DNA from: Paramoeba atlantica
Lineage: Eukaryota > Protista > Discosea
Direction: 5' to 3'
Assembly (NCBI GenBank): GCA_977017575.1
Contig: CDRNVI010000044.1
Location: 434,001 to 498,000, forward strand
DNA length: 64,000 nucleotides
Positions 13,423 through 24,566 of this stretch are shown piece after piece; position 1 is the first letter of the stretch; the number at the start of each line of letters is the position of its first letter. A program made the position numbers and the translations under genes. The notes under the pieces were generated by a model that was not told the origin of the DNA, ran no database searches, and saw only the letters and a list, made by a program, of their open reading frames with translations.

Positions 13423-13808
13423 GGTTGGTTGGTTGGTTGCTTTCGGGGGCAATCCGGGTGCAGAGAGCTGCGACAGAGCCGAGGTGCGGAGAGCTTGGCG
13501 ACCGTCAGGTGCGGAGAGCCGTAAACGCGGGCAGCGAGGGACACGTCTAGTGGTCCTCAAGGGAGGCCACCGTGACGCCTATCCCTCTCGGAGAGGTAAG
13601 GGTCGCGAGGAAAGAAGCCGAGAGAGGGAAGCACTCACTCCAGGGGAGTGCGTCGGGGAGGGGTGAAGGGATGAAGGAGCGCCCTCTGCTTCAGCGATCA
13701 AGAGGGACAGTTCCAGCCTTAGCGCCGGCCGGCAACGGGCATGAAAATACAGTAAGAGTATGCCCGTTGCCGGGGAAAGAGAGGATGAACAACAAGGTAC
13801 AGAAACTG
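13423..13808 (-). mobile_element. SL-capped short structured retroposon ending in (AACC)4
   Basis: Starts with CAGTTTCTGTACCTTGTTG (13808-13790); perfect 14-bp hairpin CCGGCAACGGGCAT/ATGCCCGTTGCCGG; three GCTCTC(C/T)GCACC repeats; microsatellite tail at 13423-13438. Confidence 0.65.
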
Positions 13809-13810
13809 AT

Positions 13811-14510
13811 GGTGTTGCTAATCCCTGGACAGTATGCTGCCCAGGGGCACAGCAACTCCCCATTATCTCGGCGTAGTAAACATTCTAAACAATCGTTAAC
13901 ATTCTTTATCGTTAACATTCTAAACAATAGGTCATAAAGATTTCGAATAACGGATCACAAATGTCACAAACAATCTGTCATAAGGCTGCGAACATCATAA
14001 AGATCTAAAATCCTGCATCTTAAAGAAAACTTCTAATATTAGCCGTGTGTTTTTTTTTCTTTTCTATCAACGCGACCCGCGTAATACATCCAATAATGCG
14101 GCGTTAGCAATATATTTACAACCTACAACTTACTCGCTTACTCGTCCCCCACGGCGGGATGTAATTTACCAACCATTTTTTTTTCTTTTTTGCAAAAGCG
14201 ACCAGGGCGAGATCTTGCTTCCCCTCACGGGACTTTACATCTTCTCGGGGAGGCCCCCAACACAAATTCTTTCAACAGATCCAAATCATTCGTGCGTACT
14301 TCGCACCGGATCTTCCGACTTCTGTTCAGCCTGCTCCTTCTCGTGCCACGAGATGCGCGAGAGCTGGGCATTTGCCTAGAGCGGCATGATCACGTTTTTT
14401 TTTCTCTCGGCGATTACAGTTCCAGGCAAGCCAAGGCGTGTTTACTACGCCGAGATAATGGGGAGTTGCTGTGTCCCTGGGCAGCATACTGTCCAGAGAT
14501 TAGCAACACC
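13811..14510. repeat. 72-bp inverted repeat pair (13811-13882 and 14439-14510), each a nested hairpin
   Basis: 70/72 identical; the right copy extends to a GATAATGGGG/CCCCATTATC stem (14454-14519). Confidence 0.85.
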
Positions 14511-17599: not shown

Positions 17600-20500
17600 G
17601 CTCTCATCTCTCTCTAAGCGAGCGTTTCCTCTGAGGGGTTCTTCCCGTAAGTACTGATATGCAAACTGGGATCTCATTCTTGACGCATGTGTCACTCTTG
17701 CGCAGTTTTGTACCAACTTTTTCATTGGTTTTGGTCGATTTTCCTTTCGAACGGATGCGTTTCAATGTTTTTGATGAATGGGTTCTACTAACAACTTCAT
17801 TTTGAGAAAGAGCCTCAGATTTGGGGGGATGGGGTGTTTCCTCTTCAGCCCTCACCTGTGTAAATGCAAAAACTGCCAAAGTCCGTTTTTGTAACGATTT
17901 TGTCGTTAAAACTTTTTGTCTGTGTTCAGTGGGGTCATGTTTCGTCTTTTGGAGCAGGATTTTTCTTCCAAACCACGGAAACAAAAGGAGGCGTTTTCGT
18001 CAGACTGTTGAGAAGCTCTTTTCGCAAGCCAGTCCGATGTGTCATTATGTGGGTTCCCTTCATGCCCCCTAACCTTGATGATGAACACGCGTCGGTCCGC
18101 TTCTAATTGAAAGAAGACACGATGTATCTTTGATAAGAGGTCCGAATTTTCAAATTGGTGAAACCCGAATAGAGAAAACCTGTTCCGAATCACATGGAAA
18201 AATTCCCATACATACGCAGAGTCTGTGTGAATGATAATATCCTTCTCATGCTTCATTGCCATCTGCAGAGCCTCATAGACAGCATAAAGTTCCGCAGCTG
18301 TTATTGTGAGTGATATTTCTGACGGAGGTTTTAGTCCTACAAGTGTCTTTTCTACCCGATTGCCAAATAACACAATACCGCAACCTGATGAAATTCCTGT
18401 TTTCGTTGTTCTTAATGCGCCGTCTGTGTATAAATGCAAGGAATCCGTAAGGAAGTGAAAAGGCACCGCATCTTCTTCTACGAATTGTAATGACGAGTAG
18501 ACTTTTTGCTTCATTGAATCCTGTTTGGTTTTTTCCCATCTTGGAGATTCTATAGGAAGATAATTCGGACGTGGCTCAAGGCGCGCCTTTCAACGATCAA
18601 CATTAGAGCGCCAGCGTGTTCTGTCTTTAGAAATTTGAATAACATCGGGAACAGACAAGCTTAGATCATCGGAACAAGATTCAGACAGACAGGTTTGCGT
18701 CTTTCGTTCACGTTCTCGCCAGAGAATCGCCACACTGAAAGGAGAATCGTGTCGAAGAAGATGGCCTATAAGCTGCGCTCTCTGTATTTTCGCCACCGTG
18801 CTAAGCTTTGAATCATTTTGATACAGAGCTTCTGTTCGAATACCCCTTTTCCCATCCCAAGTACGGCCTACACCACACACCATTCTGCGCATTTTGTTTA
18901 CCTCAATATCTAATTCCCGGAGCCTATTGGTTGATATACCCCATGCTCCTGAATTATATTGCACTACTGGCATCACAAGTGTACGGAATACTGTCATACG
19001 GCTCGAGATTGGCAAAGGTGATTTCCAGATCGGCCTAAGTTTATGCATCAATGCCCACCCAAGTCTCATTCGTTCGTTGGGTGCAACATTTCGATCCTCG
19101 CTTTCCTGCGTGCTTCCTATTTGTAAACTCTGGGGATATGCCCTATACCCGGTATTATAAGTTCGCCCCCGCTATCAGAAACCTTTCCCATAGTCATCCA
19201 AGCAGTTTTATTGACCCCCAAGTTAATACCGAGGTTTGCCTTCCGAGCAGCTCGGTAAAGACTCTCTAACATGTCAGCGAGTTCTACTTTAGATGAGGCA
19301 AATAAGACTATATCATCGGCGTAGTCGATATCCGAGATACGCAAATGTTTCTCACCACGGCTTTTCGATCCTGTAGAATATGTTATTAAACCAGACCCTT
19401 TAGCATCGAGCGCTTCTGCCAATATCCGATCGAGTACCATGATAAACAGATAGGGTGCGAGAACGTCTCCTTGCAGAGTACCATTGCTAATTGAAAAAGA
19501 TTCCGTGTTTCCGTACGGTGTCCTTACGAATGATGTTAGACCGTCATACATACTCATAATCACTTTCGAAAGGTTTTCTGGTATATTGAAAGAATGAAGT
19601 GCTTCACGTATGGCAGAAAAAGAAACTGATGGGAAAGCTCGTTTAAAATCCACAAATGACACCGCAACTCCTTCACCCCTCAAGGCCTTGGCGGTGATTT
19701 CCAAGAAAGTAGCTTGAGCACCAGCAGTAGACCTATGTGGACGAAAACCGAACTGATTCGGCCTAAGCATGTTTTCTACCGCTGGTTGGATTCGGTCGAG
19801 TACCATCCGATTCATTATCTTTACCACGTGATTAACAATGCACACCGGCCGCCAGTTAGATAGAATACCCAAATTTCCCTTTTTTGGAAGCGGAACTTGA
19901 AGTATCGTTTTCCATTTATCTGAAACAGCCTCCGTTTCTCGGACATCATTTATTATTTGAAGTAACGTCCCCATCAATCCGTCATGCGAGTTCAAAGATC
20001 GTAGAGCTTCGACTGGGATGTCGTCGGAACCAGCCGCCCTTCCGGCCTTTACCTTCTGCAGAGCTTTGCGCAGCTCATGGAGGTTAAACTCTTTATCATT
20101 TATCCCAATCATGCTCTTTGTCGATAGGGGAAAATTCAAATTTTCTACTTTTGTCAGCTCTTGCTGTCCAATTGCCTGGAAATGATTCTTTACAGTAGAA
20201 AGGCTATCCTGAGCAGTATCTCCAAACAAAGAAAATTCCTTACGATTGTCTCCTACAATGTTACGTATGGTGCGATATGCGCTCTTTGGGCGTTTGTATA
20301 AATCTTCTTCTAGGACTTTACATTACTCCGTTATGCTTTTATTGATCTGTTCTGCATGTGCTTTCGCAAAAGTATCAAATTTGCGCTGATTCCTGGACAC
20401 CCTTAATATAGTTTTCATGTCAAAACTCCCGGGATCAGACGTATCATTCGCAGCTCTATTTATATTGTTATCAGTAACGCGTAGAGGTAGTTTTCCGGAA

Positions 20501-21885
20501 GCTTCCTTCACAGCCGTAGATAATTTATCCCACAGTAATGGTCCAATCTCATCATCTCTCGATCTCTTGTTTCCCCCATCCATTGCCACCTCCACATTTT
20601 TGATGAAGGCATCTTTTATGCCCTCATTTCGAAGAGATCCCCAAAACGGTTTTCGGTTTCCCGCATTACTTTTGGCTTTCCATCGTATTTTTAGCCCTGT
20701 AATAACAACACAATGTCGCGTAGCTATTGGTGCCAGGAGCACCTTCTGAGAACGAATGGCAGAACAAAAGCGATTGTTTGTAATAATATGATCCAGCTGC
20801 TTCGTGAGTCCAAGTGGATGCTTCGGAGTAGGGGGAAACCGATACGTCCATTTTCTCTCCGCACTGCAACATTCATGTGCGGATTTCGCTCCAATTGATA
20901 GTAGAAACTTCTTAAATTCTCGTGTACGTTTAGAAGAACACTTTTTCCCCATAGATGTTTGCAGGGGAGAGTTCATATCCCCACAGATGATTTTCAGCGA
21001 GCTTTCGGAGTCATGCCATGCGTCGAAGAGTTCTTCATCAAACTCAGATTGCGTAGTTTTCTTTGCTCCTGCTGTAGGAGAATAAACGTTGAATACGCTT
21101 GCATTAATATCTCCAACTTTCATTGTACCCTTCATTATACGATCATTGATTTTGTCAACATTCATTGGTAAAAGACTTAAAATCGCCATCCCGTTATACC
21201 CCTTAACGGCACTCATAAAATATAGATGAATATTCATGCCACCCAGATAGAGCCGACGGTGGATAATAGGCTCTTCGCTTTCAAACGACAAACGCGTTTC
21301 CTGCAGGGTCATTATGGTAACACCGTAACTCCGCATGAATGCCACGGCCTGGTATAGACGATAACTGCGACGTAGAGCAAATGCGTCCGCGGACTTGCAT
21401 TTCAATGTGTCCACATTTAGGGTGCTCACCACAAACCCCCCTCTCATAGCTTGAATCTTGGGTCTCTGCTCTCGGGCGCCACGCCGAAAACAGGTTTTGC
21501 GCTTCCGATTGCGTCCGTGTAATGATTTTGGGAGTATTCCAACCCTGCCTCCCAGCACATGGACACGTTCATCTCTCGGTGGAAACGGGAGGAGCCGTCC
21601 ATTCATCAAGTCGTACTTAACAAGCCAATTAGACCCGCCAAGCGAAGAATGAACAACCCCTTCCCAAAGTGTAATGCGTTCGCGGTAGGCCATGCGCCAA
21701 ACAACAGCCACACGTTTTCCAACTCCAAAAACCTTCGACATCTGCAAAAGGGCACGCTGCCGGAGTTTTGTTACACCCCCCCTCTGCTTTGGAGGCAGAA
21801 AGAGGTTGCCCCGACCACACCTGGCCGTTCGGAGTTTGTCACGAACTTCCAACAAACCATCTAACGGTCCGGAGGCCGCCGCCAT
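17600..21885 (-). mobile_element. Near full-length APE-RT-RNase H non-LTR retrotransposon, copy C (ingi/L1Tc/I-like architecture)
   Basis: APE: STLNVDTL, TLQETR, NVYSPT, ICGDMNS, QLDHII; RT with intact YADD; RNase H LYTDGA/AELYA/IHTDS/VRGHEGNPHNDTSD; one in-frame TAA at 20323 and frameshifts near 19117 and 18550. Confidence 0.95.
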
Positions 21886-21900
21886 TTTGTATCAACGTAT

Positions 21901-22536
21901 TAATACAAAAAGTGATCTTAATACAAAAAGTGATCTTAATACAAAAAGTGATCTTAATACAAAAAGTGATCTTAATACAAAAAGTGATCTTAATACAAAA
22001 AGTGATCTTAATACAAAAAGTGATCTTAATACAAAAAGTGATCTTAATACAAAAAGTGATCTTAATACAAAAAGTGATCTTTAATACAAAAAGTGATCTT
22101 TAATACAAAAAGTGATCTTTAATACAAAAAGTGATCTTTAATACAAAAAGTGATCTTTAATACAAAAAGTGATCTTTAATACAAAAAGTGATCTTTAATA
22201 CAAAAAGTGATCTTTAATACAAAAAGTGATCTTTAATACAAAAAGTGATCTTTAATACAAAAAGTGATCTTTAATACAAAAAGTGATCTTTAATACAAAA
22301 AGTGATCTTTAATACAAAAAGTGATCTTTAATACAAAAAGTGATCTTTAATACAAAAAGTGATCTTTAATACAAAAAGTGATCTTTAATACAAAAAGTGA
22401 TCTTTAATACAAAAAGTGATCTTTAATACAAAAAGTGATCTTTAATACAAAAAGTGATCTTTAATACAAAAAGTGATCTTTAATACAAAAAGTGATCTTT
22501 AATACAAAAAGTGATCTTTAATACAAAAAGTGATTT
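21901..22536. repeat. Tandem array TAATACAAAAAGTGATCT: 10 x 18 bp then about 24 x 19 bp
   Basis: Direct reading; the register switches at 22081. Confidence 0.98.
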
Positions 22537-23052
22537 TTGTAGCGAACCTCACCTCCCGAGCTTTATTTCCGTCCACAGCAACGGTTCATATTGTAATATT
22601 ATTTTTTACCACGGAACTGGGTTTTTCTGTGGTTTTTACTCGGTGTCGTGTAAGTCCTCGGAGTGCTTCTCCAGGCATGTTCTGCTATGGGCGTTTAACG
22701 AACTCGAAATAATATTATAGTATCCTATGCATCAGTTACATTAGCAACTAGCATTTAGGTATACACATTTTTTTATATTTTTTACTTTAAGCACTTTCTT
22801 GTTTATTAGTGTTAATAAATATAAACAAAAAATAAATATTATTAATAATAGTTTATTATTAGTGTTAGCTTCATGAAAAAAATCTTTGCTCAAGAACAGT
22901 TCCTTCACTCTCTTCCCCTCCGTCATCGACCCTTGCTTCGCTACCGATGTCATTTGTCAATTCACATAGCACATTGATAATGCGTACAGCACTTTGATGA
23001 TGCGTTATTTGGAAAATAAAGGTGTTTTCAAGAAATGGTGAACACTCATCTC

Positions 23053-23274
23053 TGCTCCCGGCGAGGTCCCGGTGTTGCGAGAGGCCTCCATACCCCACAA
23101 ATACCACCTCCCCCCCCCTATTTAGCGGGGGTCGCGCGAGCGACCCCTGATAAATGGGGGAACTTCCCCCATTTGAACCCTTCCCCCGGGGAAGGGTGGT
23201 AGTTGTTTTGGGGGAAATGAGAGGCCGAACGCATGGAGGGGCCGGCCGGGCCAATGAACCTAGATCTTGTTTAC
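23053..23274. repeat. Foldback (rod-like palindromic) repeat, copy 1
   Basis: Homologous to 47711-47939 and 48002-48093; central GGGGTCGC-GCGA-GCGACCCC hairpin. Confidence 0.85.
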
Positions 23275-23364
23275 ATTACAACCGGTTAATAATTTCACCT
23301 TTGTGCTTTCCCTCTAATAATTTCACCGGTGCTCGCTGTTTCCCGTCGCTGTCTAGGCGTTTGG

Positions 23365-24034
23365 TTTTTTTTTGGGGGGGGGAGTAGTATTGATTCTAAT
23401 GTTTATATCTACGTTTCGAACTTTCCACCACTTAAAACCTTTCACCCTACTTCCTTCCTTCCCCTACTTCCTTCCCCTCACCGCACTCACTTCCCTTCCC
23501 CCACTTACCCCCTACCGACTGACGCGTCCCTACTGACCGGCTCGCCCGCACTGTGGCCCATGTGGTCCAGGACCTCCGCTCCCACCCCGTTAGCAGTATA
23601 AGATACTTTGAGTTGCTGTACGAGGGTGGGAGACTTGAAGGAGACGAAACGCATAGCCGCCGTCACGCCGAGGGCAAAAAGCGGGAAGAGGGACATGGCG
23701 GGACGGACGCGGGGACAAGGAGAAACGGCGCCCGAGCCCATCGGTCTGGACCTCTGCCCCCACCCCGTGAGCAAGTATACAATACTTTGGGCTGCTGGCA
23801 CGGGGGTGGGGGACGCAAGAGAGGAAAACAACAGAACGACAAGCGCGCTTACACGGAAGGTCGAGGTGGGGGGATACGGCGCAGGGGGATGATGGGACGA
23901 GAGAGGGAGGGGGGATGCCGACAAGAAAGTGTGTATTTGAGGGGGGTGCCCTCCTATGGTCTGGAAGATGGTGTAGGGAAGAAAAAGGAAATAATTCAAC
24001 AAGGTACAGAAACTGTATCTTTATCGTTAAAGTT
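23365..24034 (-). mobile_element. Processed retrocopy of an SL-trans-spliced, polyadenylated transcript
   Basis: 38-nt SL-like exon at 24034-23997 not followed by GT, about 620 nt body, A9 at 23373-23365, flanking TTTGGTTTT direct repeat (23360-23368 and 24046-24054). Confidence 0.75.
23997..24034 (-). other. Spliced-leader (mini-exon) sequence AACTTTAACGATAAAGATACAGTTTCTGTACCTTGTTG
   Basis: Shares the AACT start, ACAGTTTCTGTAC core and TTG end with the T. brucei 39-nt SL AACTAACGCTATTATTAGAACAGTTTCTGTACTATATTG; the last 19 nt are identical to 13790-13808. Confidence 0.85.
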
Positions 24035-24189
24035 TTTTTTTTATATTTGGTTTTACGTTGGGAAACTGACATTCTGAAGGTCAAATCAAATTCTGGTCAA
24101 ATAAAAACACGTATGAGCTATCAATGTGCTATCAAAGTGCCGCTTAATAAGCATTATCAATGTACCGCTTAGTATGCGTTATCAATGTG

Positions 24190-24566
24190 CGGGCGCCGGC
24201 TGGTGGTTCACGGAAACCTTGCTACGCCCCGGTGGAAAAGTCACCCTCCAGGGCGGTAGCGAATATATCATTGAACTAAAGGCACCCTGGGAGGAATCTA
24301 TGGACGGGGAACATGAACGGATGAGGAACAAGTACAACGAACTGGTACACAGAAGGAGGCTAACTAACCCGAGGTGCCAACTTCTGATTTTTGAAATTGG
24401 TGCACACGGGTTGCCTAATACATCTTGTCGCACACTATTTTCGCGGTACAGCGGCGACAATTTTCTTGCATTTGCCTTTCTAGAACATACAAATGATTCA
24501 AAAGGCCGTGCGCGGCAGTTTTATCACGCGACGAGAGTGCATGGCATGGGAAGGGGGGACCAGTAG
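24190..24566 (+). pseudogene. Restriction-like endonuclease (PD-(D/E)xK) C-terminal fragment of an RLE-class non-LTR retrotransposon
   Basis: IIELKAPWEESMDGEHERMRNKYNEL...IFEIGAHG..NTS, then frameshifted AVRGSFI.RR...W, resembling the ELxxPWE...KY..L...EVG.RG RLE pattern. Confidence 0.75.

Follow-up and report, generated by a model that had tools for sequence, protein, structure and literature searches.

A spliced leader at the head of an A-tailed, probably non-coding retroposon family in a kinetoplastid genome

In the textbook view of kinetoplastids, the spliced leader (SL) exon is confined in DNA to the SL RNA genes. SL-tagged retrogenes were reportedly described in dinoflagellates by Slamovits and Keeling in 2008. 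Dinoflagellate genomes are known to contain such retrogenes ("recycled processed cDNAs") as well as relict leaders (PMC6050394, PMC5585692), and the dinoflagellate SL has been proposed as a promoter-like 5' module (PMC6050394). Two other described systems come from trypanosomatids: the RIME/NARTc/SIDER-type partners are LINE deletion derivatives that retain the 79-bp 5' signature of the LINE (PMC2323293), and SLACS/CZAR/CRE are LINEs that insert into SL RNA genes (PMC12278014). For leader-headed retroelements or relict leaders in kinetoplastids, our literature search, which was incomplete, found no publication. New here are a full-leader, A-tailed passenger family, its empty site, 3' transduction from one of its copies and a count of relict leaders.

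The copy described below lies in a 64-kb stretch of DNA that was analyzed as a whole (64,000 nt, referred to as the window herein). Although we have no RNA data, we consider it very likely that this copy is a young, still polymorphic member of a non-autonomous retroposon family of at least 57 copies, whose RNA intermediate carried the SL at its 5' end and an A tail at its 3' end. The insert comprises ∼690 bases and, read on the minus strand, consists of a target-site duplication (TSD) copy, TAT, A10, SL, body, C9 and A9/TSD (Table 1). An earlier note on this DNA, made from the letters alone, had listed an SL-like exon, the lack of a GT donor, an A9 tract, flanking repeats and TAT plus extra A, and all of these were found where it had placed them. 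The A10 run occupies 24042-24033, and its last two A residues are possibly SL nucleotides 1-2. The SL is fused straight to AATTATTTCC (23996 downwards), with which the 614-nt body (23996-23383) opens; the SL is thus followed by AATTATTT, without GT, and the junction reads TTG/AATT, without AG. The A9 tract (23373-23365) holds only A5 of the tail plus 4 bases of the duplication, its last four A residues opening the second AAAACCAAA. An internal repeat proposed in the earlier note is real, with units of ∼65 nt rather than the ∼47 nt given there. A genome search found TAT + A10 + CTTT in no other copy, and we rejected inheritance of the filler from a source copy since no copy with such a filler was found.

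Table 1. Features of the insert and its surroundings (window coordinates)
Feature	Position	Strand	Basis or remark
Upstream TSD copy, 9 bp; AAAACCAAA on the element strand (TTTGGTTTT on the plus strand)	24046-24054	-	Sequence and empty-site contig
5' filler between TSD and SL: TAT (24045-24043) and A-run	24035-24045	-	Sequence
DNA copy of the 38-nt SL exon; nt 3-38 certain (24032-23997, reading CTTTAACG...CCTTGTTG), nt 1-2 (24034-24033) merging into the A-run	23997-24034	-	Identity to the SL RNA gene exon
Pyrimidine-rich 39-nt leader after the SL, AATTATTTCCTTTTTCTTCC...	23958-23996	-	First ∼20 nt common to leaders of SL-headed LINE families
150-codon frame, start ATA in the window copy	23505-23957	-	Weak constraint, no known domain
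Hairpin repeat unit 1, stem CCCCCACCCC / GGGGTGGGGG	23748-23814	-	21 pairs predicted, of which 2 show compensatory change across unit types
Hairpin repeat unit 2, stem CTCCCACCC / GGGTGGGAG	23570-23634	-	Predicted pairing
3' body, purine-rich, poorly conserved, end ...AATCAATACTACT	23383-23540	-	Subfamily comparison
C9 run (23382-23374) and tail remainder A5 (23373-23369)	23369-23382	-	Sequence
Downstream TSD copy	23360-23368	-	Sequence and empty-site contig
Downstream flank transduced into the daughter at G000:C83:389094-389205	23255-23366	-	112 nt, 100% identical
Neighboring LINE: APE endonuclease	20323-21885	-	Separate open frame
Neighboring LINE: RT	19117-20229	-	Separate open frame
Neighboring LINE: RNase H	17906-18514	-	Separate open frame

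To establish whether the head of the insert is an authentic leader, we rely on the SL RNA genes of the same genome. The same 38 nt followed by GTATGAGAAGC occur 40 times genome-wide, at the exon-intron junctions of SL RNA genes, so that what the earlier note could only call SL-like is the real SL of this organism. Tandem arrays of 12 and 9 units, ∼2.56 kb apart, are found on contigs C97 and C107, and two of the 40 junctions, both on C11, carry a GTCC exon variant. In the array unit examined (L038, G000:C3:779248-782268), 5S rRNA genes lie between the SL genes on the opposite strand; a 2001 paper by Santana et al., cited in PMC2621209, links 5S rRNA genes with bodonid SL gene arrays in its title. 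Chance cannot explain an exact match of 36-38 nt to the SL exon, and the reversed-pattern controls for our genome pattern searches gave 0 matches. The last 20 nt of the SL occur 743 times, dispersed over the genome, compared with 40 SL gene junctions, which implies that most genomic SL copies lie outside SL genes. True SL RNA genes account for 40 of ∼750 copies, and most of the others head retroelements. Approximately 197 SL copies continue with GT, most of them being another repeat that starts with a partial leader. The window also contains a second leader fragment (the last 19 nt; 13790-13815, minus strand) joined to a different, hairpin-rich body, and this fragment belongs to a partial-leader family that elsewhere continues with GTACATTTT.

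A head equal to the SL exon could also belong to a SINE derived from an SL RNA gene, with its own promoter and never spliced, since SINE heads usually come from small RNA genes. However, similarity to the SL genes ends at the exon-intron boundary, with both the intron and the upstream promoter region absent, and the same exon-only head is found on many unrelated bodies. Moreover, the 3' tail is not common to the candidate driver LINE described below, and the classical features of a SINE are unmet: there is no LINE-derived 3' tail and no Pol III-type head, as no Rfam family was found in the element at the gathering threshold or at E up to 1. We regard such an origin as scarcely tenable.

The extent of copying at the 5' end is less certain. 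Reverse transcription had been proposed to have reached the AACT (cap-4) end of the RNA; we can follow it to SL nucleotide 3, and nucleotides 1-2, being hidden in A10, are not demonstrable. Across 93 sampled leader sites, nucleotides 3-38 of the SL are stable, whereas the two positions preceding CTTTAACG differ from site to site (AA, AT, CC, G, GT, TT, TGAA). This variation could be due to RT misreading modified cap-4 bases or to microhomology joining, both of which are inferred.

The insertion event itself is documented by one public contig from run X1, in which TCTAGGCG (23352-23359) is joined directly to 24046 onwards via a single AAAACCAAA. This contig represents the empty site. It unites the flanks of the 9-bp AAAACCAAA found at both ends of the insert and thereby confirms the TSD, which had been only a candidate; the evidence is good but thin, consisting of one contig and eight letters. 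The empty site also shows that the insert includes TAT and the A-run. With an SL head, an A tail and a TSD, the anatomy of target-primed reverse transcription is present, in agreement with the earlier proposal that a trans-spliced, A-tailed RNA was copied. It is nevertheless possible that the template was not freshly spliced but took over its SL from a source copy that already had one, since SL-bearing copies are themselves sources, as the 3' transduction described below indicates.

Sibling copies have TSDs of A(n)GAATC, A(n)TGAA and A(n)CCTGAATCG, have tails of A8 to A30, and show 5' truncation, with the break in the body or, within the SL, at one of its AA dinucleotides. The 3' end of other copies is a C(6-11) run, to which AATTATT(C/T)GC is added in some, and then A(8-30). 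Head-to-tail chains of element, A tail, leader and element are common. An A-run directly upstream of the SL was present in 19 of 23 family copies, in 17 of 28 copies of the LsmAD LINEs described below and at 1 of 40 other SL-headed sites. Around the insert, an ∼86-nt repeat unit with dozens of copies begins 92 nt downstream (flank 23188-23274), and the upstream flank at 24126-24200 contains a short "cacattgata" type repeat that is also found beside SL RNA genes at C3:782499.

The window copy has in turn been a source. On contig C83, the body and A12 are followed by 112 nt identical to the window copy's downstream flank (23366-23255), and these in turn by a further tail, A23. Genome-wide, the initial 92 nt of this flank were found only at the window locus and on C83, and the empty-site contig shows that the flank is native to the window locus. 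Since this unique flank was carried along with a new A23 tail, a transcript of the window locus read through the encoded A-run, received its poly(A) tail 112 nt further on and gave rise to the C83 copy. This conclusion is drawn from DNA, and none of the runs recorded as RNA contains the stretch. The C83 daughter opens with A25 and a short piece like the first bases of the SL, fused to body position ∼238. Four sites in its body disagree with the window copy and agree instead with other copies, so that either the transduction predates the changes in the window copy or the daughter is a template-switch chimera. If the transduction predates the changes, the window locus could be the master of the copies at C4:403544 and C94:69663.

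Among the public contigs listed, none bridges the 5' junction of the window locus, as would be the case if the SL-body junction were an assembly or cDNA chimera absent from genomic DNA. However, the same junction is found at no fewer than 46 independent loci with different flanks, and the window lies inside a contig of at least 790 kb. The 3' junction and flank, moreover, were copied into the daughter locus and appear in contigs of two runs; these contigs are indistinguishable from the C83 daughter and fit it equally. We therefore give a chimera practically no credence.

The body matches dozens of loci at 96-99%, ∼88% and ∼78% identity. By means of the frame-start motif, we identified 57 copies with the 5' region, including the window copy, in at least four subfamilies. 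In 46 of these 57, the exact SL end lies 15-45 nt upstream of ATG, and the remainder have a mutated or truncated SL. Between subfamilies, the SL is conserved at 100%, the next 40-120 nt at 82-94% and the hairpin units highly, with ∼78% identity over the whole element. The purine-rich 3' part drifts between subfamilies, and some subfamilies contain a third hairpin unit of 72 nt. The predicted RNA fold of the whole element was no better than that of shuffles (z = -0.85).

An SL, a short leader, an ATG-type frame, an A tail and a duplication are the anatomy of a processed mRNA copy, and the insert could accordingly be a one-off processed pseudogene or retrogene, in which a host mRNA was copied once by a LINE and an SL-less parent survives elsewhere. 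The earlier note had suggested looking for a parental locus with AG at the junction and no SL; in the assembly, we found no 5' leader of this family that is preceded by AG or that lacks an SL. A single copying event is also at odds with 57 SL-headed copies in several subfamilies, with the window copy being a source itself, and with a frame that has no homologue outside the family. A one-off retrogene is consequently very improbable in our judgment.

Whether the family encodes a protein required closer attention. The earlier note saw no recognizable ORF (at best ∼78 aa), which we could not uphold, as a frame of 150 codons is open in the window copy with ATA in place of the ATG found elsewhere. 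The frame has 141-174 codons and a CCATGG start in most copies; the start is ATG in 54 other copies, 2 more have a single mismatch elsewhere, and ATA is unique to the window copy. These features would suit a protein-coding multigene family (141-174 aa, two hydrophobic stretches) spread by retroposition: the frame remains open in all subfamilies despite 22% DNA divergence, no frameshifting differences separate the subfamilies, the repeat-unit insertion of 72 nt equals 24 codons, and the CCATGG start is conserved outside the window copy. On the other hand, comparisons between subfamilies give dN/dS values of 0.55-0.8, and the most closely related pairs values of ∼1 or higher. The reading frame differs between the two DNA repeat units, and the C/G-rich sequence keeps two minus-strand frames and one plus-strand frame open across the element. 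Several copies, including the window copy, have lost the start or the frame. In addition, no Pfam family was found for the frame, and a homologue search gave only 4 proteins, all of the same family. We therefore consider a coding family unlikely. Judging from sequence comparison, the body is probably non-coding, its conserved parts being the SL with the leader and the two hairpins. Taken together, the 57 copies in several subfamilies, the absence of an SL-less parent and the weak coding constraint make a non-coding retroposon, rather than a retrogene, the best fit, as the earlier note had guessed in closing.

A non-autonomous family needs a driver. When the sample of 93 leader sites was used to survey SL-headed bodies, many bodies were found to open a long frame with an LsmAD-like domain. 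More than 110 copies were scored for this LsmAD LINE group, and their open frames span 1199-1350 aa. Zinc fingers are located close to the N-terminus, and the N-terminal 487 aa and the C-terminal 333 aa align colinearly with a protein of 1278 aa in which RVT_1 occupies 518-722. It is through this colinear relative that the RT is tied to the LsmAD frames, because among the 150 of 1851 candidates listed in our RT census there was no positional tie to them. The C-terminal part contains CPxxGC...H...C and then RPAD...D...K (CCHC + PD-like), which by motif reading would correspond to a restriction-like endonuclease. PDB sequence searches and the protein atlas gave nothing useful for the LINE pieces. 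An RNase H suggested by a tblastn match in a sibling locus remained unconfirmed when the LINE frames of L103 and L003 were compared with the RNase H ORF. The relatives of the LINE C-terminal domain (P0011, P0014) include more remote, RT-bearing kin of these LINEs, some with the MLLE domain of poly(A)-binding protein and others with an N-terminal Prim-Pol; host modules for handling RNA and DNA seem to be exchanged within the lineage.

We consider LINEs with LsmAD, RT and restriction-like endonuclease the likely drivers of the family, their role in mobilization being inferred from shared habits only, namely the SL head, the A tail and the A-run targets. The leader (∼20 nt) is the only sequence that the body has in common with the SL-headed LINEs, and comparison of the element with the LINE 3' UTR revealed no similarity beyond the C-run and the A tail. 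Since passenger and LINE have no 3' sequence in common, recognition via the A tail is the simplest inference. No LsmAD LINE is found inside the 64-kb window. Adjoining the insert at 17600-22560 (minus strand) is an APE-RT-RNase H LINE without a leader head, preceded by ∼35 tandem copies of an 18-19-nt unit (21900-22560). That this neighboring APE-type LINE could equally be the driver is not excluded. In at least two places (G000:C1:50994-55838 and C3:645509-650332, among L014, L017, L018, L026 and L027), an LsmAD LINE, an A tail and a family member form a composite, in which the member has a 13-nt duplicated leader start. At a third locus (C3:∼818344-818984, L014), at least the LINE 3' end and the family member are in common. 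Apparently, the whole composite was copied together, either through read-through or by a segmental duplication.

At 70 sites genome-wide, a full SL is followed by a tandem relict of its own last 7, 8, 10 or 16 bases, compared with 0 for the reversed-pattern control. For instance, such relicts are found at G000:C20:57441-57481, C35:33558-33598 and C63:378798-378838. Each site has one or two tandem relict copies, and some sites have three layers. Five of the sites belong to the family, and the window copy has no relict. Only the 16-base relict (∼11 of 70 sites) starts right after the internal AG of the SL, as expected if the encoded leader were trans-spliced again; the commoner 10- and 7-base relicts, which do not follow an AG, may stem from RT slippage. 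The 30 nt searched upstream of encoded SLs contained no further complete SL (0 matches).

These observations lead us to propose, tentatively and with rather less than even confidence, that the SL is a heritable part of mobile elements. SL-bearing copies would be re-expressed, would receive or regenerate an SL and would be retroposed again, with the SL and the pyrimidine-rich leader acting as a 5' module that defines the start or works like a promoter, as proposed for the dinoflagellate SL, and the passenger, as a self-propagating lineage, driven via poly(A) by LsmAD LINEs. Because the junction lacks an AG, it is unexplained how such a copy returns to an RNA headed by one SL and no more. Conceivable routes are transcription beginning anew at the encoded SL, homology-guided template switching onto another SL-bearing RNA, and units bounded by A-runs on both sides.

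The pathway that we envisage would begin with transcription of a sense source copy inside a polycistronic unit, for which the daughter carrying the downstream flank is the evidence. The resulting RNA would have the SL exactly at the exon boundary, from which trans-splicing is inferred, whether in the same generation or in an ancestor. A LINE RT, by inference that of the LINEs with LsmAD and a restriction-like endonuclease, would then nick just before an A-run, prime on the A tail and copy up to the SL, steps whose hallmarks are seen in the insert and its siblings. Joining at the 5' end would be untidy, which would leave filler, truncation at AA and partial SL duplications. The outcome at the window locus would be the 9-bp duplication of AAAACCAAA.

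Several features make the window copy a useful handle: a TSD with an empty allele, an SL-headed copy that was transcribed and recopied, and a passenger that depends on mobilization in trans, for which its A tail is the probable route. Two questions thereby become testable: how mobile elements are expressed in polycistronic genomes poor in promoters, and whether RT can pass the hypermethylated cap-4 end, the latter being raised by the fact that the variable SL positions are 1 and 2.

Compared with mammalian L1-driven pseudogenes, Alu and SVA, the family has the same A tail, TSDs starting with A residues, 5' truncation and 3' transduction, and, like L1 passengers, it inserts into older A tails and has no 3' sequence in common with the LINE. 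Unlike Alu, SVA and L1 copies, it is headed by a trans-spliced leader and not by a Pol III gene or a cap-proximal UTR, and its likely driver differs from L1 in having an LsmAD domain and a restriction-like rather than an APE endonuclease. Closer to the host, trypanosomatid RIME/ingi, NARTc/L1Tc and SIDER resemble the family as short non-autonomous partners of LINEs with A tails in polycistronic units. In contrast to RIME, NARTc and SIDER, the body has only a leader of ∼20 nt common to the LINEs of this genome, the 79-bp signature not having been among the sequences compared. With SLACS/CZAR/CRE and NeSL-1, the system has in common a candidate driver LINE with RT and a restriction-like endonuclease, A tails and an SL-using host. 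Those elements occupy a fixed position inside SL RNA genes, whereas the targets here are A-runs; unlike in SLACS/CZAR/CRE, the whole SL exon is present at one element end only, with no intron after it.

The dinoflagellate SL-tagged retrogenes offer the parallel for the leader itself. In both systems, DNA copies begin with the SL. Relict SL pieces behind a full SL, which repeated rounds leave in dinoflagellates, are seen here at the 70 sites, although for most of them RT slippage is an alternative. In contrast to dinoflagellates, the carriers here are mobile elements and a probably non-coding passenger instead of host genes, no surviving host parent gene was found for the family, and most relicts start at non-AG positions. 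The A tails and A-run TSDs point to LINE-type insertion, and the organism is a free-living kinetoplastid. If the SL is indeed heritable in these elements, SL recycling would be known for the first time from outside alveolates, and for the first time with mobile elements rather than genes as its carriers. SL tags also offer a ready-made record of past retroposition in Euglenozoa, as they do in dinoflagellates.
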